Virus record (IMG/VR): IMGVR_UViG_3300037502_003770
Coordinates: 248,001-312,000 of that record
Direction: 5' to 3' (one strand)
Length of the DNA stretch: 64,000 nucleotides
The notes under the pieces are model-generated. The model had not been told where the DNA came from. It worked only from the letters and a program-made list of their open reading frames with translations, and searched no databases. Of this stretch, positions 21,201-54,347 are shown piece after piece. Made by a program: the position numbers and the translations under genes. Each line of letters begins with the position of its first letter. The stretch's first letter is position 1.

Positions 21201-22846
21201 TAAAAGAACAGGTTTATTATAATTTTAAAACAATATATGAAAGATATTTATATAATAAAGAATATAAACCTTTTGCCGATAATAATGGTATTCCGTTAGA
21301 ACAAAGTTTTCAATTTGTTGATAGAGTATATAAAGATATTTCTCAAGACGTAATATTGACTTATGATAAACTTGTTCAAGATTCAAAAACCGATGATATA
21401 AGTATTTATACATCTATTTCAAATTTATTATCACATAATAATTTTATATTTTTCCCTTTTCAAAATTTTATAGCATCAGGTGATGGTAATTTAGAAGAGT
21501 GGATAAAATGTTTTCAAGTAAGTAATACTAATATAAGAGAAAATCAATCAAAACCTAGTTTTGTTTGTATGTTTACAGGTGGTTATTCTAATTATTTAAA
21601 TATTGATAATAATTCTCCATCATATCCTGATGATGGTGTTAAAATATATAATTTTGATGAAAACAGTAATTATGTTATAAATAATAATTTACCACAAGAT
21701 TTTTTATCTGGTAATACAATATATTGTTTTAGATATAATTATGGTCAACAAAATGAAGCTGTTTTTAATGGTATTAATTTAAGTACAACCCAATTTAATA
21801 ATACTGATGCTTCTTTAAAAATACAAGATTCCGTAATTAATCAACAATATAATTCAAACCCTATTTCTAAAGGACAGAGTTTATTAAATATTTATAGAAA
21901 TTTATCATATACTCTATCTTCAGGTATATATTATGGTAATGTATGTATTCAACCTACACAATATATACAATTAGATAATGTACCTTTATTTAATGGTTTA
22001 TATATGATATATGAAGTTGAACATAAAATGTCTACTAATAATAGATTAGAAACATCTTTTAAGGCTTACCGTATTAATAAATATGTTATTCGTTTAGTAA
22101 CAGATATTGCTTTAGATATATTTGGTATTGATACAGGTGTTAATAGTTCACAAAATGAAATTAATACTACTAATACAAATAATTCTAACGATACACTATT
22201 TTTACAAAGTAAAGTAAAAGAAAATTCAACTCAATTTGTTCAGAAAGCACAAGATATAGCTACTAAATTTAATATTAATCCAGATTGGTTAATGTTAGTT
22301 ATTGATACTGAAACAGGTTTTAATGATAATGTAATTAGAGGTAGAGTAAATAATAATGTTGGTTTAACTCAATTATTACCGATTACAATTCAAGAATTAA
22401 TTAACCAATATAAATTAAATATTTCAGTAGAAACATTAAGAAATAGAATTATAAATGCACCTTATGTAAATATTAATTCAAATGGTTTAGATAAAACTAA
22501 AGGTTTCTTTTATACAGGTAATCATGATAATAATGACCAATTAGATTATTTTTATATGTACTATAATATAGCTTCAATAAAAAACAGAAACATTAAAGAT
22601 ATTTATCCAAGTTTTTATCATATGAAAGCTTTTGGTTTTGAACCTTATGGGGTATATGTCAAATATCTTAAAAGTAATTCTTCTGATTCTGAATTTAGAA
22701 AAGATTCTTTATCTTATAATCCAGAAGTTTTAAAATATAATTCTGATGTTATTGGTAAAGAAGGTATTATTGAAAATATGATTCAATTCTTTAACAATAA
22801 AATGAAAAAAGAGTACAAGTATCCTATCGAAAATCTTGTTTCTTAA
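18236..22846 (+). CDS. Large baseplate hub/tail-tip protein with a C-terminal lytic transglycosylase-like domain
   Basis: N-terminal FGITNINIK..PEVNIEFIDIKG; hub-like GNVCIQPTQY..FNGLYMIYEVEH; C-terminal IATKFNINPDWLMLVIDTETGF..VGLTQ. Confidence 0.7.
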   Translation: MVNKILSNKYNNVLFVDPNAVAANDTVDIYNISTSPENIRPHLEFYCIPRIGNNITLDKNNKAILSDNNSINNIKVNFLGFDSNTGHYTNKYLTDIYNQERTDNFEGFGITNINIKISANYVPEVNIEFIDIKGRSISDINSPYRRLFDVPPPLFKLIVKGGYGLFTEFDLYITKHEISSDESQNLIIKADFIGDRYGVLTDVLLGYLNSVYFMESNSTGIDISSQTKATSFYEFMSRSKVLYSNVDKFKKNSSLFKKQEAIQEKINKIKEVDDNIKNLLSIDELLSQIKSLYETNSTKYTLVNNNLISSPNIINIGDNEFSIELDKIFVSDYIKTVKKQFSDLLFNINSSFPEFGLNYNIDEDIEILTFTNQNNSLGLRFTKIIEKNKNYLSTLEKELKSTNELLAKEAEDIVFQTISSKPTIGNIFSFILKDTDKFLKLLKQSGDEGGKRTLRINNNIKTRGGYPTVINNSGKVIYPGILDEFKDFPEVKFVEKYLNALINKKLTDSEIDRQFISQGTNTTQTGNESYIPISVDESFSIRKSLGVENYYYNINNDFRKIFTNVFLRYVVLRDSIYYNQFNNENILTFYAKAEARNIVYSMIANKKMLDILTKKGFDTLNKSNYYEDLVRTIFNNQLPEEIIKINKGKEEKIPFEIGLIKEKIDYLSTSNKDYNSLKIIKADENYTFSPSQVTISSTNDIISEYINGQKNFIDNILDSFVFDDLNKLEFNQNFFFNKDKNYNNELGNSNSDFLNLKDNNILTKIFNYIVGIETKNNLYSFFQTATIKEYNFSKDSIDTTNGISIDVLFNSLSYSSDASYFRDFITKMTFKLSTPSLVEIPYLFILYFGYILKEMNKSNSTFINDIGRSIDFQGLNSNIDEQFFIDEYNSFLNNSNLFEYKILPESTDENEKFFLDNFLIKRYILVKNNNCFRILKQESKRTFSQVNDNKINTYLKHLISEMLNVAKSYLSDLNKEEQKIRSEINDNDLKEQVYYNFKTIYERYLYNKEYKPFADNNGIPLEQSFQFVDRVYKDISQDVILTYDKLVQDSKTDDISIYTSISNLLSHNNFIFFPFQNFIASGDGNLEEWIKCFQVSNTNIRENQSKPSFVCMFTGGYSNYLNIDNNSPSYPDDGVKIYNFDENSNYVINNNLPQDFLSGNTIYCFRYNYGQQNEAVFNGINLSTTQFNNTDASLKIQDSVINQQYNSNPISKGQSLLNIYRNLSYTLSSGIYYGNVCIQPTQYIQLDNVPLFNGLYMIYEVEHKMSTNNRLETSFKAYRINKYVIRLVTDIALDIFGIDTGVNSSQNEINTTNTNNSNDTLFLQSKVKENSTQFVQKAQDIATKFNINPDWLMLVIDTETGFNDNVIRGRVNNNVGLTQLLPITIQELINQYKLNISVETLRNRIINAPYVNINSNGLDKTKGFFYTGNHDNNDQLDYFYMYYNIASIKNRNIKDIYPSFYHMKAFGFEPYGVYVKYLKSNSSDSEFRKDSLSYNPEVLKYNSDVIGKEGIIENMIQFFNNKMKKEYKYPIENLVS

Positions 22847-46261: not shown

Positions 46262-46512
46262 TGGAAAATTTAGTATTACGATATTTTGAATCTGAAGAAT
46301 TTGTTGGGAATTGGGAACATATAAAACCTTTTAAATATTCTTCAAAAGAAGATTTCTTTTTACATATTATGTATCAACCTATAATTTTAAAAGAATTTAA
46401 TTTATGGGATGAAACAGATTTAACTACATCTGAAAGAATAGAAGAAATACTTGACAATATAGAAGTTTTTACTTTAGAAGAATGGTTTTCACAAAATGAA
46501 ATTAAACTATGA
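46261..46512 (+). CDS. Hypothetical protein
   Basis: 83-aa coupled ORF. Confidence 0.55.
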   Translation: MENLVLRYFESEEFVGNWEHIKPFKYSSKEDFFLHIMYQPIILKEFNLWDETDLTTSERIEEILDNIEVFTLEEWFSQNEIKL

Positions 46513-46880
46513 TAAAAGTGAGGTTTAATTTAGCTAGAGGTAAAAATTATAAAAAATGGAAAATTGATTATGGTAATAATAATGTTACATATCATTCTAT
46601 TGATGAAGTTTTTTTAATTATGAAAAATTGTTTTCTTAAAAATAATACTAAAATAGCTAATAAAATATTTAACGGTGCTAATAAAAATGTTTGTGCTTTT
46701 ATCATATGTGAAAATATCGAAATAATATTAAAAACAGAATCTATCTTAGAAAAAAATGATTTAGAATTAAAATATAATCCTAAAGTAAATCCATATTGGG
46801 TTTTTAATGATGTTAATTATGATAATAAGACTATTAGTGAATTATATACAGTAAGTAACAAAATATATATTAAAAATTAA
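46509..46880 (+). CDS. Hypothetical protein
   Basis: 123 aa; VRFNLARG..WKI and LKYNPKVNPYW blocks. Confidence 0.55.
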   Translation: MIKVRFNLARGKNYKKWKIDYGNNNVTYHSIDEVFLIMKNCFLKNNTKIANKIFNGANKNVCAFIICENIEIILKTESILEKNDLELKYNPKVNPYWVFNDVNYDNKTISELYTVSNKIYIKN

Positions 46881-49413: not shown

Positions 49414-50262
49414 ATGGAAGAAAATAACAATATAGATAGTTTTTTTGATTTATTAAAAAATCTACCTGAAAATATTAAAAATAAACTAGCCTCCACAATA
49501 ATAAGTGGAGGTATAGCTTTAAGTAATGTTGAAAAGAATACTTTAAATGATTCTAATAAAACAGAAATTTCTCAAGCAATGGGTCTTGAACAAGGAAATT
49601 TTTTAGCTGATTTACTTGCAGGTAGAAAAACTAAAGCTTCTCAAGAATATGTTAAGAAATATTATGAAATTTTAAATAGAAGTGTTCTTTTAGAACAAAA
49701 ACATCGTGATATAGAATCTAAAAAAGATGGTTTATATAATAGAATGGCTAATGCTTTTCTTGATGAAGGAAATGTCAATCAATATCAAAAATATAATTTT
49801 AGACAAAACGCTTCTCATGAAGAAAATAAAGAACTTTTAAATGAACAATTTAATAGACAATTATCAAATAATCCAAATTATAAATTCTTATTTAATGTAC
49901 AACCTAAATTAGAAAGTTATTCACCTGATTATAGTAACCCTTCTTTAATAAGTCATAATTATAATGTTATTATAAATAATAATGCTGATATACAATATTT
50001 AAAATTCATCTATGCTTTGATTAATAGTATTTATGTATATGAAAATAAATCAAACAAAAATGATGTTTTAATTGAAATAAAACTTATTTCAGATAATGGA
50101 TTTAATACTTTTGTAAAAAATATTATGACAGTTACAAGTCTTGATATTTTAATTAAATCAATTGTTAATGAAGGCGATAAAGAATATTCTTTTAATATGT
50201 ACTCTCAAGAAAATATTCAATCTGAAAGAAAAATTATTTTAAAAGGTGATGTTATTTTTTAA
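49414..50262 (+). CDS. Hypothetical protein
   Basis: 282-aa ORF. Confidence 0.6.
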   Translation: MEENNNIDSFFDLLKNLPENIKNKLASTIISGGIALSNVEKNTLNDSNKTEISQAMGLEQGNFLADLLAGRKTKASQEYVKKYYEILNRSVLLEQKHRDIESKKDGLYNRMANAFLDEGNVNQYQKYNFRQNASHEENKELLNEQFNRQLSNNPNYKFLFNVQPKLESYSPDYSNPSLISHNYNVIINNNADIQYLKFIYALINSIYVYENKSNKNDVLIEIKLISDNGFNTFVKNIMTVTSLDILIKSIVNEGDKEYSFNMYSQENIQSERKIILKGDVIF

Positions 50263-50301
50263 CAAAATATATTTCTAAAAGTATTATCTATATCAAACAA
50301 G

Positions 50302-50373
50302 ACGATTGTAGTTCAGCAGGTAGAACGAAGGTCAGAAAACCTTGAGTCGACAGTTCAAGTCTGTCCTTTCGTT
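50302..50373 (+). ncRNA. Non-canonical tRNA-like RNA, apparently derived from tRNA-Phe(GAA)
   Basis: Intact D arm GTTC-AGCAGGTA-GAAC and T arm GACAG-TTCAAGT-CTGTC. Anticodon arm AAGGT-CAGAAA-ACCTT has a 6-nt loop with no U33. Two T-T mismatches in the acceptor stem; no CCA. Confidence 0.65.
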
Positions 50374-50392
50374 TGTTTGATATTTTAATTTT

Positions 50393-50465
50393 GGTGTTGT
50401 AGCTCAGTTGGTAGAGCGATTGACTGTTAATCAATTGGTCGTAGGTTCAATCCCTACCATCACCG
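50393..50465 (+). tRNA. tRNA-Asn(GTT)
   Basis: Cloverleaf with ATTGA-CTGTTAA-TCAAT anticodon arm and G73; CCA not encoded. Confidence 0.92.
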
Positions 50466-50496
50466 CTTTATTTTAAAAATATAATCTTTCTTTAAT

Positions 50497-51102
50497 ATGA
50501 ATTATTCTAAACATTTATTTATTTCTATTGGTACTGAAATTAACTTTGATTTTCATTCTATTTCTGATGAATATGAATTAAAATTAGTTAATGATTCTAA
50601 AAATAACAATGAATATGCTAGTTTAGTTTATTTAGGTGAATTTTCTGAATTAAAACAATTTACTTTAGGTTATGTAGATTCAACAACAAATGAATTTAAA
50701 AGTAGTACATTTAAAATAGATGATAAATATACAACAGAAAAAGAATTATTAACGATTTTAGTTAAATGTTTAAAACAATTTTATCAAAAATATCCTGTTT
50801 TAAACGGTTATATGTTATTTGATTATATAACTCCTTTTTTAATAAAAAGATTAATTGTTAATGGTTTTTTATTAAATGAATTACCAGCTCATTTAACAGA
50901 TTATACAAAAAAGCCTTGGGAAAAAATAAACTTTTGTTTATATGATTTCTGGAAGTTTGGTAGTTATAATAAATCTGCAACAATGTATATTCTATGTAAA
51001 CTATTTAATGTTGAATTTGATATACATAATATAAATAGTGAGACCTTTCTAAAAAGTTATTTTTCTTTAATTGAGAAAATCTTTAAGAAGAATACTATTT
51101 AA
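50497..51102 (+). CDS. PolB-type 3'-5' exonuclease-like protein, probably catalytically dead
   Basis: EKELL, PFLIKRLIVNG..LP, KPWE and DFWKFG resemble the stand-alone PolB-exo family, but ExoI reads SIGT rather than DIET. Confidence 0.55.
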   Translation: MNYSKHLFISIGTEINFDFHSISDEYELKLVNDSKNNNEYASLVYLGEFSELKQFTLGYVDSTTNEFKSSTFKIDDKYTTEKELLTILVKCLKQFYQKYPVLNGYMLFDYITPFLIKRLIVNGFLLNELPAHLTDYTKKPWEKINFCLYDFWKFGSYNKSATMYILCKLFNVEFDIHNINSETFLKSYFSLIEKIFKKNTI

Positions 51103-51117
51103 ATAAAATATAAACAA

Positions 51118-51191
51118 CGCAGGGTAGAGCAGTGGTCAGCTCGCAAGGCTCATAACCTTTGAGGTCGTTGGTTCGAATCCAATCCCTGCTA
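51118..51191 (+). tRNA. Initiator-type tRNA-Met(CAT)
   Basis: C1:T72 mismatch, A11-U24 pair (GAGC/GCTC), loop CTCATAA; one extra T at the 3' side of the anticodon stem. Confidence 0.85.
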
Positions 51192-51231
51192 CTAATTTAA
51201 ATTAATTTTACTATTTATATAATATATATTT

Positions 51232-52485
51232 ATGTACTCTATTAAAATAAGACTTTATTTAAATAAAAAACAACAAGAAAAATTAGAATCAATTTTTAAT
51301 TCTTGTCGTTTTATTTATAATAAATGTCTTTCTTATAAAATAGATACATATAATAATGAAAAAAGAATTTTAAGTGAATTTGATTTAGTAAATTATTATG
51401 GGCAAGTTTTAAGAAAAGACCCTAATTATAGTTTTTTATTAAATACAAATTCTAAACTACATAATTCTACAATTCTTCATGTTAATTCATCATTTGTCAA
51501 TTTTATTAAACATAATAAAGGTTTTCCTAAGTTTAAAAGTAAAAGAGAAAAAGAAAAAAGTTGTAAATTTCCTAATAAAGCTATTTCTGTTAACTTTTTA
51601 TCAGAAGGAAAGTATTTAAATTTTATAACTGATTTTAATAGAGTAAGGTTTAGAACTTCAAAAAAATATTTAGAAATATTAAAATCTATTAAAAGAGATG
51701 ATATACAAAACATAACTGTTACTAAGAAAAGAAGTGGTATTTATGAAGCTTCCATTTGTTTAAATAAATCAAAACCAAAGGGAAAAAAGTTAAAAGATAC
51801 CAATTCTATTATAGGAATAGATTTAGGTGTTAAACAACTATTAACCCTTTCTGATAATACCTCCTTTCAAAATAAAAAGTTTTATAAGAAAGAGGATATT
51901 AAATTAAAGAAATTACAAAGAAAGCTTTCTAAAAGTATAAAGTGTTTTAAAGAGAGTAAAAATGAAGATAGTAAGTATTTTGGAAAAAATAAAGGTAAAA
52001 ATTTAGAAAAGAACAGATTAAAAGTAGCAAGACTTAATGAAAAAATAACAAACCAAAAAGATACTTATATTCATGAAATAACTTCTAAAATTATAAACGA
52101 AAACCAAGTTATAATAATGGAAGATTTGAATGTACAAGGAATGTTAAAAAATCATAAACTTGCAAGGTCAATTCAAAATGTCTCTTTTTATGAAATAAAG
52201 AGGCAGTTAGAATATAAATCGTCTTTTTATGGAAGAGAATTAATCCTTGTAGATAGGTTTTTTCCATCAAGTAAGACTTGTTCTTGCTGCGGAAGTAAAA
52301 AGAAAGATTTAAAATTAAGTGACCGAGTATACAAATGTAATAACCCTTCATGCGGAGTAGAAATCGATAGAGATTTAAATGCAGCGATTAATATTCGCAA
52401 CGAAGGAATAAAAATAAAAAATAACCTTCACTTAAATGTGAAGGTTATTAAAAAGAAAAGTAGGGGTCCGTTGCTCCGAACATAA
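51232..52485 (+). CDS. tnpB: TnpB RNA-guided endonuclease (IS200/IS605/IS607 family), no adjacent transposase
   Basis: N-terminal HTH (KIRLY..CRFIYN), GFPKFKSK, RuvC D (GIDLG), E (MEDL), D (DRDLNAAINI), zinc ribbon CSCC...C...C. Confidence 0.93.
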   Translation: MYSIKIRLYLNKKQQEKLESIFNSCRFIYNKCLSYKIDTYNNEKRILSEFDLVNYYGQVLRKDPNYSFLLNTNSKLHNSTILHVNSSFVNFIKHNKGFPKFKSKREKEKSCKFPNKAISVNFLSEGKYLNFITDFNRVRFRTSKKYLEILKSIKRDDIQNITVTKKRSGIYEASICLNKSKPKGKKLKDTNSIIGIDLGVKQLLTLSDNTSFQNKKFYKKEDIKLKKLQRKLSKSIKCFKESKNEDSKYFGKNKGKNLEKNRLKVARLNEKITNQKDTYIHEITSKIINENQVIIMEDLNVQGMLKNHKLARSIQNVSFYEIKRQLEYKSSFYGRELILVDRFFPSSKTCSCCGSKKKDLKLSDRVYKCNNPSCGVEIDRDLNAAINIRNEGIKIKNNLHLNVKVIKKKSRGPLLRT

Positions 52486-52596
52486 CGCTTGCGGACTATC
52501 CACTATCGGGGTTATAATTGCAATATATTATAATTAGATATGATAGGTTGAAACAAGAAAAATATAAAACGATGTCTCTCAGGTAACATTTAATAT
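52420..52596 (+). ncRNA. Putative omega-RNA (reRNA) of TnpB; boundaries uncertain
   Basis: GC-richer structured tract overlapping the tnpB 3' end: 12-bp hairpin at 52420-52449, GTAGGG..CCGAA..ACGCTTGCGGACTATC pairing with GATAGGTTGAAACAAG, inner TTATAAT/ATTATAA stem. Confidence 0.6.
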
Positions 52597-52668
52597 GCTC
52601 GGTTGGTCTAACGGTCATGACGACTCACTTTCTATGAGTAAATAAGAGTTCGATTCTCTTATCGAGTA
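52597..52668 (+). tRNA. tRNA-Glu(TTC) with U37
   Basis: Acceptor GCTCGGT/ATCGAGT, anticodon arm ACTCA-CTTTCTA-TGAGT, T arm AAGAG-TTCGATT-CTCTT. Confidence 0.85.
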
Positions 52669-52679
52669 CAATAAAATAC

Positions 52680-52754
52680 GGAGTATTGGTATAATGGTTA
52701 TTACGCTTCACTGTCTATGAAGTAATACGAGTTCGATTCTCGTATACTCCGCCA
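52680..52754 (+). tRNA. tRNA-Asp(GTC) with U37
   Basis: Acceptor GGAGTAT/ATACTCC, anticodon arm CTTCA-CTGTCTA-TGAAG, G73, encoded CCA. Confidence 0.88.
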
Positions 52755-52773
52755 AATTAAATTAATATATAAT

Positions 52774-52989
52774 ATGACAACAGAACAAGGAAAATTTTTT
52801 ACAGTAAAAGTAAAATACGAAGAAACTACTGAAAAGGGTGGTACAAAATTAAAAACAGAATATAAAATTGTAAGAGCAGATTCTACAACAGAAGCTACCG
52901 AAAAGGTTTATAAATTATTCGATAACACAATGCTTATTTTTGAAGTTACTGATGTAAATTCAATGAAAGCTAATGAATATGTTAACTAA
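52774..52989 (+). CDS. DUF4494-like small protein
   Basis: FFTVKVKYE....G..K..TEYKIVRADSTTEATEKV resembles the N-domain of Bacteroidota DUF4494. Confidence 0.6.
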   Translation: MTTEQGKFFTVKVKYEETTEKGGTKLKTEYKIVRADSTTEATEKVYKLFDNTMLIFEVTDVNSMKANEYVN

Positions 52990-53004
52990 AAATAATTATT
53001 TTTT

Positions 53005-53370
53005 ATGATTTCTATTAATTTAGAAGAAACTAAAAATCAAATAAAAGAACTTTTATTTAAAAAAGGAAATCTTTATTTTGAAAGTAAAGATACTGAAATA
53101 AATAAAACTTTTGATGAAGTATATGATATTAATTTATTTCATAATGGAAGTCAGTTTATTTTAACTTTTTTATATAAAAGTTTTTATATTGATGAAGATA
53201 GATTTTTCTTTTTTAAAACCCTTTCTTCAGATAAAGTATTTTTTAATCAAGATGAAAATCTTGATGATGTTATTAATAAAGCTATTGATAACCTAAATAT
53301 GAATAAAATAAATAAAACAATCTTTAATAAAGAATATAGGTCTTTTTTAAAGAAAATTAAAGAATTATAA
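53005..53370 (+). CDS. Hypothetical protein
   Basis: 121-aa ORF. Confidence 0.55.
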   Translation: MISINLEETKNQIKELLFKKGNLYFESKDTEINKTFDEVYDINLFHNGSQFILTFLYKSFYIDEDRFFFFKTLSSDKVFFNQDENLDDVINKAIDNLNMNKINKTIFNKEYRSFLKKIKEL

Positions 53371-53374
53371 AAAT

Positions 53375-53584
53375 ATGTTTTTAGATGTAAGGGACCAAGA
53401 TTATTTAGATAGTAAAGAAAAAAATTCTATTAAAGAAATCATGACAAGTATTATTAATAGAACTGAAAAAACTTTAGAAGAAAGTAGGAAAATATCTAAT
53501 AAAGTACCAGGATTAAATGAAAATTTAAATGATATTGAAAAAATACTTTTAAAAATAAAAGAAAATTTACAAAAATTAAATTAA
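53375..53584 (+). CDS. Small coiled-coil protein
   Basis: 69-aa ORF. Confidence 0.5.
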   Translation: MFLDVRDQDYLDSKEKNSIKEIMTSIINRTEKTLEESRKISNKVPGLNENLNDIEKILLKIKENLQKLN

Positions 53585-53585
53585 A

Positions 53586-54347
53586 ATGGATAATACAGAA
53601 CAACAAATAGAAGAATCAAAAGTAATAGTTACTTATGATGAAAATGGTTTTGCTACGATTCTTTTAAAAGAATTTAATGATATTAAAAATGTTAATATAC
53701 CATCTTGTACAATTAAAGAAATTAAATTATTATCTAATGCTTTATCTGATACCGATAGTAAATATATTACTAAATTAATATATATTGAAAATAAATTAAA
53801 AGATATAGAAAAAGTAGTTAATAAACTACCAACCAAATCAAATTTTGATACATTATATAATAAAGTATCAAGAATTAATGATTATATTTATGAATTAAAA
53901 AATCCTAAAATAGAAGATAGTGAAGAAACTAAAAAGTTTTTAGCTGAACAAAAGGTTTTAAATGATAAAAAGAAAGAAGAATTATTAAAACAATTACTTG
54001 AAGATGAAATTAATGACAATGAGTATAATACAACAAATTATACAAATAAAAATACTCATAAAGTTCATATTAAAGATAATTGCATTATACATAAACATGA
54101 TTTAGAATATACTAAAGATAATTTTTACAATGAAGCAACCAAGTTTCATGGTGAAGATATATTAAAAACAGTAGTTGATATGGATTATAGTTGGTATAAG
54201 AAAAAGTTTTCTATTATAAAAGAAGTTCCAATTATACATGAATATACTGATAATGCAATTTGTATTTTTTTAAAAGATTATTCTGATTTAAAAGATATTG
54301 AAGAACAAATAAAAGATAAAACAATAAAAGAAATTAAATTAATATAA
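53586..54347 (+). CDS. Coiled-coil protein; C-terminal domain paralogous to the next gene
   Basis: VPIIHEY..NAICIFLKDYSDLKDIEEQIKDKTIKEI. Confidence 0.6.
   Translation: MDNTEQQIEESKVIVTYDENGFATILLKEFNDIKNVNIPSCTIKEIKLLSNALSDTDSKYITKLIYIENKLKDIEKVVNKLPTKSNFDTLYNKVSRINDYIYELKNPKIEDSEETKKFLAEQKVLNDKKKEELLKQLLEDEINDNEYNTTNYTNKNTHKVHIKDNCIIHKHDLEYTKDNFYNEATKFHGEDILKTVVDMDYSWYKKKFSIIKEVPIIHEYTDNAICIFLKDYSDLKDIEEQIKDKTIKEIKLI

Follow-up and report, generated by a model that had tools for sequence, protein, structure and literature searches.

A strain-variable tnpB/omega-RNA cassette of IS607 ancestry between tRNA genes of a jumbo phage, probably of the homing type

Genes and features of the locus

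The window analysed here is a 64,000-nucleotide (nt) stretch, from base 248001 to base 312000, of an IMG/VR virus record that has 312,694 bp and is 96% complete by CheckV; among public runs, the one that best covers this stretch is a subsurface metagenome. Between a tRNA-Met and a tRNA-Glu gene, the window carries a gene for TnpB, an RNA-guided nuclease, whose 3' end overlaps the putative omega-RNA; we refer to this locus as copy A. An earlier note, made from the sequence of the stretch alone, had described a solo TnpB tied to the phage programme, whose guide would be completed by maturation of the adjoining tRNA. Our analysis points to another explanation: the segment 51197-52560 is probably a strain-variable tnpB/omega-RNA cassette of IS607 ancestry, which starts with a phage late-type promoter motif and would act through homing or marker exclusion. 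It is best read as a selfish, phage-adapted nuclease cassette of the homing type, the homing being proposed by analogy with studied systems. The features of the locus are the following (positions are those of the window unless the genome is named).

51095-51102, plus strand: promoter-like motif ACTATTTA, 15 nt before tRNA-Met
51118-51192, plus strand: tRNA-Met(CAT), found by ARAGORN and Rfam
51197-52591, plus strand: segment differing from the sister strain, made up of the TnpB cassette and 31 nt (BLAST breaks at 51196 and 52592)
51206-51220, plus strand: TTTTACTATTTATAT, phage promoter-like motif of the cassette, also upstream of copies B and D and of TnpB-E (see below)
51232-52485, plus strand: tnpB coding sequence, 417 amino acids (aa), with D197/E297/D379-381 and two CxxC pairs
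52420-52449, plus strand: variable 5' stem-loop of the omega-RNA, inside the 3' end of the open reading frame (ORF), with a 12-bp stem and compensatory changes
52461-52560, plus strand: conserved omega-RNA core, from TAGGGG to GAAACAAGAAA, defined by identity between copies A and B and by covariation
52561-52596, plus strand: copy-specific 36 nt in guide position; the flank diverges past 52560 in all copies
52572-52588, plus strand: 17-nt fragment ATGTCTCTCAGGTAACA, matching the anticodon arm of a sister-strain tRNA-Asp allele at 15/17 positions
52597-52669, plus strand: tRNA-Glu(TTC), found by ARAGORN and Rfam; its 5' end is the expected RNase P site
52680-52754, plus strand: tRNA-Asp(GTC), allele of this strain, found by ARAGORN and Rfam

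The gene encodes a full-length TnpB

The ORF 51232-52485 scores above all cut-offs for the Pfam domains HTH_OrfB_IS605 (PF12323), OrfB_IS605 (PF01385) and Cas12f1-like_TNB (PF07282), and matches phrog_506 with an E value of 6e-100. It aligns with the TnpB of ISDra2 over residues 5-394 (E 7e-40) and with that of the IS607 element ISFba1 over residues 3-390 (E 6e-46; PDB 8iaz, identified as ISFba1 TnpB in PMC11061315). The top match among solved structures is the nuclease 9yyg, designed by artificial intelligence (E 1e-51), and 8iaz is the best natural one. The three RuvC motifs, GIDLG (D197), IMEDLN (E297) and IDRDLNAA (D379/D381), are intact and align with those of 9yyg and 8iaz, which confirms the D-E-D triad reported in the earlier note; both CxxC pairs of the zinc ribbon are also kept. 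On the strength of this domain set, the triad and the omega-RNA described below, the ORF is classified from its sequence as a full-length TnpB. A homing endonuclease of the Seg/Mob type was ruled out, the Pfam matches being to TnpB domains only, with no GIY-YIG or HNH domain. The gene itself is ordinary, since TnpB genes are frequent in phages, including huge phages (PMC12607003), and most tnpB genes have no neighbouring transposase.

The ratio of nonsynonymous to synonymous substitution rates (dN/dS) of copy A against copies B and D is 0.31-0.49, a value that indicates purifying selection. The gene has also adapted to the composition of the phage genome, as far as GATC is concerned. This tetranucleotide, whose avoidance in the codons of tnpB had been noticed earlier, is indeed absent from the gene; genome-wide its count is 0, against ~590 expected per strand. 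It is missing from all six tnpB genes of the genome (13.8 sites expected), compared with 5-7 sites in the outside relatives. The phage genome has a guanine-plus-cytosine (GC) content of 22.3%, and other 4-base palindromes are extremely avoided as well: GGCC and CGCG do not occur in the 312.7 kb, and CCGG occurs once.

The omega-RNA core is conserved and its 3' end is defined

Copies A and B are 98% identical in the core at 52461-52560; over their entire region of similarity, made up largely of the gene, the value is 84%. The GC content of the core is 38%, against 23% in the coding sequence. Its end at GAAACAAGAAA (52550-52560) is set by copies A, B and D and by five outside relatives. The scaffold-like GAAACAAGA pointed out in the earlier note ends at 52558 and represents, according to the alignment of copies and relatives, the 3' end of this conserved core; the distance to base 1 of tRNA-Glu, estimated there at about 38 nt, is 38 nt by count. 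The comparison of related TnpB loci that the note had proposed as a check therefore fixed the core end at 52560; the relatives P0012 and P0024, with one locus each in the look-up, gave no help in placing the start of the guide.

An RNAalifold consensus of eight family members (copies A, B and D, with L007, L076, L072, L077 and L078) gave a nested structure closed by the helix CTTG(N)/(N)CAAG, in which 8 of the 19 predicted base pairs covary. A covariance model, R1, built from this family alignment matches copies A and B only in the genome. An Rfam scan of 49500-54000 at E values up to 1 yielded tRNAs and two sub-threshold small-RNA matches, and no omega-RNA family. Upstream of the core, the hairpin at 52420-52449 was correctly seen in the earlier note as a perfect 12-bp stem; its length is not conserved, for the stem has 6 bp in copies B and D, where the sequences differ and still pair. 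The second hairpin of the omega-RNA carries paired substitutions in copy D. On the minus strand, the 12-bp hairpin of 52420-52449 with its T-run scores as an intrinsic terminator, into which no minus-strand gene runs.

The cassette lacks transposase and element ends

Six TnpB genes with a zinc ribbon are present in the genome, starting at 22209(+), 62727(-), 142228(+), 195915(-), 216501(+) and 299232(+), the last being copy A. Copy B (genome 216501-217736) encodes a protein 77-79% identical to that of copy A, and copy D (P0002, 77%) lies on contigs L005 and L006 of a related phage. In all three copies, which are 76-78% identical, the ORF is intact, as is every catalytic and zinc residue. The description of copy A as solo consequently holds for its immediate surroundings, and not for a genome with six TnpB genes and a copy B whose omega-RNA core is 98% identical. 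By comparison, the statement that neither TnpA nor a serine recombinase lies nearby can be extended to the whole 312,694-bp genome, in which neither Y1 TnpA (PF01797) nor a serine recombinase (PF00239) has a match; control genomes do score for the latter.

At the DNA level, A and B are similar from the promoter motif up to ...GGTTGAAACAAGAAA (52550-52560) and no further, and copy D ends at the same place. The similarity is unevenly distributed: the 3' half of tnpB with the omega-RNA (51996-52560 against genome 217260-217811) is 88-99% identical between A and B, and the 5' half 52-87%; in this 3' part, A is closer to B than to copy D. This suggests gene conversion, or a constraint shared by RNA and protein within one genome.

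The five outside relatives (L007, L076, L072, L077 and L078) are 45-48% identical in protein. A TnpA of the MerR-helix-turn-helix/resolvase type stands upstream of tnpB, immediately or one ORF away, in three of these elements (L007, L076 and L078-L081); none was called adjoining tnpB in L072-L075 and L077. Beyond the CAAGAA block, the relatives have 37-47 nt comprising a small hairpin and a T-rich stretch and ending in AACGG or GACGG, and L007 and L076 begin to diverge only past this right-end tail. IS607 ends have a GG core dinucleotide (bioRxiv 10.1101/2023.11.20.567912), which the ..ACGG right ends of the relatives fit. Copy B retains such a tail, with a TATTATA/TATAATA hairpin followed by ...TTATAACGG. 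The tail is absent in copies A and D, and copy A has 36 unrelated nt past the core. On the left side of copy A, the ~35 nt between the strain break point and the ATG are filled by the promoter motif. Taken together, these comparisons identify copy A, at the level of sequence, as a tnpB/omega-RNA module of IS607 ancestry stripped of its transposase, its left end and its right-end tail.

Complete mobile elements could be ruled out in turn: an IS607 element, as there is no TnpA gene and no right-end tail with the GG core (..AACGG); an IS200/IS605 element, as there is no Y1 TnpA and the ~35 nt left of the ATG are taken by the promoter motif; and an IStron, as the Rfam scan of 49500-54000 contained no group I intron. 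A possible surrogate recombination site was also considered. The terminus of the copy B right end represents the IS607-type recombination core of the family, and the D-loop of tRNA-Glu (52607-52614), TCTAACGGTCA, matches this terminus and its flank, TATAACGG|TCA, at 10/11 positions. The shared AACGGTCA was dropped as a recombination site, since this tRNA-Glu also occurs in the sister strain, where no cassette accompanies it.

The cassette starts with a phage promoter motif

Of all 8-mers in the 60 nt before the genes of this genome, ACTATTTA shows the strongest enrichment; it precedes 47 of 433 genes (crude gene calls), which is ~15-fold over expectation, and mostly lies 10-24 nt before the start codon. 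The earlier note had recognized a late phage motif, ACTATTTAT, 13 nt before the ATG of tnpB; its position (51210-51218) and spacing are correct, and the label 'late', which was an inference, gains support from the occurrence of this motif before the portal, major head and tail sheath genes. Within 80 nt upstream, ACTATTTA is found in 6/6 TnpB genes, compared with ~10% of other genes. It also stands upstream of TnpB-E, an unrelated TnpB of a sister strain. Copy B is antisense to its neighbours and still has the motif, which therefore belongs to the cassette. A motif common to structural genes and six TnpBs, along with a GATC-free gene, indicates from the DNA that TnpB is tied to the phage programme.

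The cassettes are strain-variable inserts

Contigs from other samples allowed us to compare the locus between strains. In L008, L009 and L011, the flanking protein genes are 96-100% identical to those of the window, and the place of the cassette is taken by tRNA-Tyr, a 59-aa ORF and tRNA-Pro (379 nt in L008); L010 and L096 have the same type of cassette-free allele. The ORF59, tRNA-Tyr and tRNA-Pro of L008 have no counterpart elsewhere in this genome. A second site, D, is occupied by copy D in L005/L006 and uninterrupted in this genome near 208066-208070; ORF86 of L005 has no homologue in this genome. At a third, site E, L011 carries the different TnpB-E, and the site is empty at 46527-46538 of the window. 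This 413-aa TnpB (L011 3634-5014) lies within the first codons of a 123-aa gene (46509-46880) and gives the downstream gene a new start codon and N-terminus.

No tRNA follows copy B or copy D. These comparisons characterize the TnpB cassettes as strain-variable inserts and the tRNA contact as peculiar to copy A. Since B and D are not tRNA-adjacent and the sister strain has no cassette at this place, we regard the tRNA junction as incidental.

The sequence in guide position

Past the core, the 36 nt of copy A (52561-52596) have no counterpart in B or D, and 52561-52591 has none in the sister strain. A search of the genome over 20 nt, allowing up to 3 mismatches, gave no second match to them. 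The guide 17-mer has 1 match in viral contigs and 54 in 596 Gb of genomes, where ~70 are expected by chance; these were rejected as targets given their chance-level number, a longest extension of 22 nt and their spread over unrelated taxa. The target search proposed earlier thus yielded neither a host nor a phage target for the candidate guide, whether in the genome or in public collections. A match of the guide start to the TnpB-E gene (L011 4851; 16/17 with one indel) was judged to be chance. The left flanks of all three copies (A, B and D) end in TAAT; an attempt to derive the target-adjacent motif (TAM) from them was dropped, the left boundary being too loose in DNA of 22% GC.

One part of the 36 nt resembles a tRNA gene. 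The fragment 52572-52588 matches the anticodon arm of the tRNA-Asp allele seen in L008 and L096 at 15/17 positions, a score reached by 1 of 500 shuffles; the tRNA-Asp allele of this strain matches at 12/17. Judging by this similarity, an older tRNA gene may once have stood at the site or close to it and left the fragment as a scar; alternatively, the fragment may be guide-like. We treat it as a lead only because it starts 11 nt past the core.

A homing-type mechanism and its rivals

If the cassette is a homing-type nuclease, the following course of events can be proposed. Late in infection, it would be transcribed together with tRNA-Glu and tRNA-Asp. Co-transcription is likely because no plus-strand terminator-like site was found between tnpB and the tRNA, and because neither tRNA-Glu nor tRNA-Asp is preceded by a separate ACTATTTA motif; one transcript thus probably carries tnpB, the omega-RNA and the tRNAs. 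TnpB would bind the omega-RNA core (about 52415-52560), and RNase P would free the tRNAs, with a predicted cut at 52596/52597. The guide of studied TnpBs has 16-20 nt. As the RNase P cut would leave 36 nt, about twice this length, further trimming would be needed, and exonucleases may shorten the tail down to the protected guide. The ribonucleoprotein could then cut the DNA of co-infecting relatives carrying a TAM and a matching sequence, and recombinational repair would lead to a biased inheritance of the cassette and its neighbourhood, by homing or marker exclusion. In this course, contact with the tRNA would be a consequence of where copy A landed, and not a property of the element. In bacteria, TnpBs of IS605 and IS607 cut, after which recombination copies the element (bioRxiv 10.1101/2023.11.20.567912), and a 'non-restorative homing' into co-infecting phages or plasmids is discussed in PMC13565253; it is from the analogy with these two that we infer homing in mixed infections.

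Several points weigh against this explanation. The route by which cassettes without ends reached three sites in the absence of a transposase is unexplained by it. As it stands, copy A could not home into the sister allele, because that allele lacks the 36-nt sequence beside both its tRNA-Met and its tRNA-Glu. Since complete relatives have the right-end tail between core and flank, the omega-RNA of copy A, which is without it, may be incomplete and inactive; alternatively, the guide may start at 52561. The dN/dS of 0.3-0.5 indicates, as a sequence measure, moderate constraint only. Finally, none of the five public runs listed, four of which contain part of the stretch, is an RNA run.

Some of these points would suit a decaying remnant, cut off from its transposase and both ends, whose gene would have persisted only for being young and harmless. 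The 37-47-nt tail with its AACGG end, present in the complete relatives and in copy B, is missing from A and D, selection at a dN/dS of 0.31-0.49 is relaxed, and no guide target was found. However, ORF, catalytic and zinc residues are intact in three copies at 76-78% identity, and they have therefore diverged under constraint; the omega-RNA core has been preserved, and shows compensatory changes, in all of them, the tail-less copy D included; and the promoter motif and GATC avoidance speak for long residence and an adaptation relevant to expression. Decay is thus an unlikely account of the locus. The model of the earlier note, a domesticated nuclease with the guide 3' end set by RNase P at the 5' end of tRNA-Glu, starts from a tRNA junction that is real, as an independent assembly (L095) has the exact same junction of core, 36 nt and tRNA-Glu, and the likely co-transcription makes an RNase P cut at 52596/52597 likely as well. 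Against it stand copies B and D, the same element free of tRNA, and the sister strains without the cassette at site A; moreover, the 36 nt left by the cut are not a guide-sized tail. The claim that tRNA maturation generates the guide end by design did not survive these observations. Nor was domestication shown: turnover of the element between strains, in place of a fixed conserved position, fits a selfish element that changes place. We therefore hold this model to be quite improbable.

The tRNA-Asp-like fragment gives rise to a further possibility, namely that the 17 nt programme TnpB-A against the tRNA-Asp allele of competing strains, or that they were left behind when the element once homed into a tRNA-Asp anticodon loop. 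In size and position the fragment suits a guide, its 15/17 match to the L008/L096 allele exceeds the 12/17 match to the phage's own allele, and no other sequences diverge as much between the strains as the tRNA genes do. Nevertheless, with the match starting 11 nt past the core, the guide start is wrong unless the boundary lies further downstream; a mismatch falls in the TAM-proximal part; the bases 5' of the match (CCTGAC) are unlike the TAAT left flanks of A, B and D; and two alleles were sampled in the comparison. We rate this idea as very improbable. Equally speculative, and given very little chance, is a bolder combination in which end-less, transposase-free cassettes swap places under a late promoter and the guide of copy A aims at the rival's tRNA-Asp gene. 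If true, it would constitute a natural RNA-guided nuclease directed against the tRNA gene of a rival phage, would link the strain divergence of tRNAs to nuclease-driven marker exclusion, and would have RNase P shape the 3' end of the RNA.

Comparison with known systems

The closest known counterparts of the cassette are the TnpBs of IS607 elements (CboIStron and kin, ISFba1). They share the TnpB architecture and the D-E-D triad, and the outside relatives with TnpA and ..ACGG ends are homologous; by analogy, the same role could be expected, i.e. cutting of the vacant site followed by restoration of the element through recombination. The differences lie in the absence of TnpA from the genome of copy A, the left end occupied by a phage promoter motif and the missing right-end tail. 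Unlike the RAGATH-18-type RNA of ISFba1, the omega-RNA here overlaps the 3' end of the ORF and has no Rfam match. The TAM is TGGG for Cbo and AGGAG for ISFba1 (bioRxiv 10.1101/2023.11.20.567912; PMC11061315). The TnpB of ISDra2 (IS200/IS605; PDB 8bf8, 8exa and 8h1j) is likewise homologous over its full length, and its omega-RNA is encoded by the last part of the gene and the sequence just past it, with the guide expected directly beyond the scaffold, as here; its Y1 TnpA and hairpin ends are absent from our locus.

Among phage systems, the free-standing homing endonucleases of T4-like phages offer a parallel, above all SegB of T4, a nuclease whose gene is likewise inserted among tRNA genes in a strain-variable way and driven by phage promoters (Brok-Volchanskaya et al. 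2008, as cited in PMC13565253; see also PMC13096335). By analogy, the expected effect of the cassette would be a preferential inheritance of the local region in mixed infections. The two are alike in function and position only, SegB being a protein-guided GIY-YIG enzyme and TnpB an RNA-guided RuvC enzyme. Solo tnpB genes and the TldRs, phage regulators derived from TnpB that are nuclease-dead (PMC13418256), provide another case of a transposase-free TnpB relative in phage with expression signals that are not those of a transposon. Copy A is not a TldR because its triad and C-terminal zinc ribbon are intact, and, unlike TldR, it has no fixed conserved position or target.

In engineered polycistronic tRNA-guide RNA arrays, guides are released by RNase P and RNase Z. 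A guide RNA directly upstream of a tRNA, cut at the tRNA 5' end, would also be expected here; the difference is that our locus offers a single natural junction that is not conserved among copies and a tail of 36 nt. A coupling of tRNA processing to guide formation would be new, and it is unsupported as a designed feature of this locus.

The significance of the locus lies elsewhere. It amounts to a natural population sample, with near-identical jumbo-phage strains that differ in the presence, absence and position of TnpB cassettes. The genome of copy A contains no transposase, its six TnpB genes have the promoter motif of the structural genes in common, and two of the copies (A and D) end exactly at the end of the omega-RNA core. 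A transposase-independent spread of TnpB between co-infecting phages thereby becomes testable on real alleles, and model R1 gives a defined omega-RNA family.

Additional observations on the genome and the tRNA region

Searches for close DNA relatives of the locus were mostly empty. The phages collection returned matches to tRNA-Asn only; the IMG/VR DNA search returned one distant TnpB locus and zero matches for the upstream gene; and an exact-pattern scan of viral contigs found no match for the 3' half of tRNA-Met or the scaffold end. A scan of metagenome contigs for the scaffold end was also empty, though L006 contains it, which indicates that the metagenome-contig collection does not cover these samples.

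Three further paralogues, at genome 69747-71057(-), 76259-77566(-) and 86891-88204(-) (L013, L014 and L015), encode proteins of 435-437 aa that are 85-87% identical, and an identical motif, TTATTTTTACTATTTATAATAA, lies 34 nt upstream of each. They have zero Pfam matches and a weak RuvC-like PHROG match, and belong to a large, mostly viral Atlas cluster, PF27229, with TnpB-related clusters among its neighbours; possibly they are TnpB-like genes that have diverged very far. One of them lies ~100 nt from the other tRNA-Met of the genome (77672-77746).

The tRNA genes are, from the sequences compared, the fastest-changing part of this region. Those at 50301-50466, 51118-51192 and 52597-52754 are 49-88% identical to their equivalents at L008 3773-5239 and L096 1-200, with compensatory changes in the stems; the protein genes between and around them are 96-100% identical. 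The tRNA-Met next to the cassette shows ~70% identity to that of the sister strain. The earlier note had placed the cassette between tRNA-fMet and tRNA-Glu; tRNA-Met(CAT) and tRNA-Glu are there, and the initiator identity is not established, as the tRNA-Met has an initiator-like 1:72 mismatch, yet just two G-C pairs beside the anticodon loop. A tRNA-like gene at 50301-50374 has a 6-nt anticodon loop (ARAGORN 'tRNA-?(Ser|Phe)(ga)'; Rfam tRNA, 44.9 bits) and is kept in the sister strain (L008 3773-3847).

A last observation concerns the neighbourhood of site D. At genome ~208040-208075 (minus strand) and at L005 6505-6560, the promoter motif of a peptidase M15 gene lies in the loop of an inverted repeat, with 7 bp here and 13 bp in the related phage, where it is found directly past copy D. 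This stem-loop recalls the promoter stem-loop cassettes of T4-type phages.

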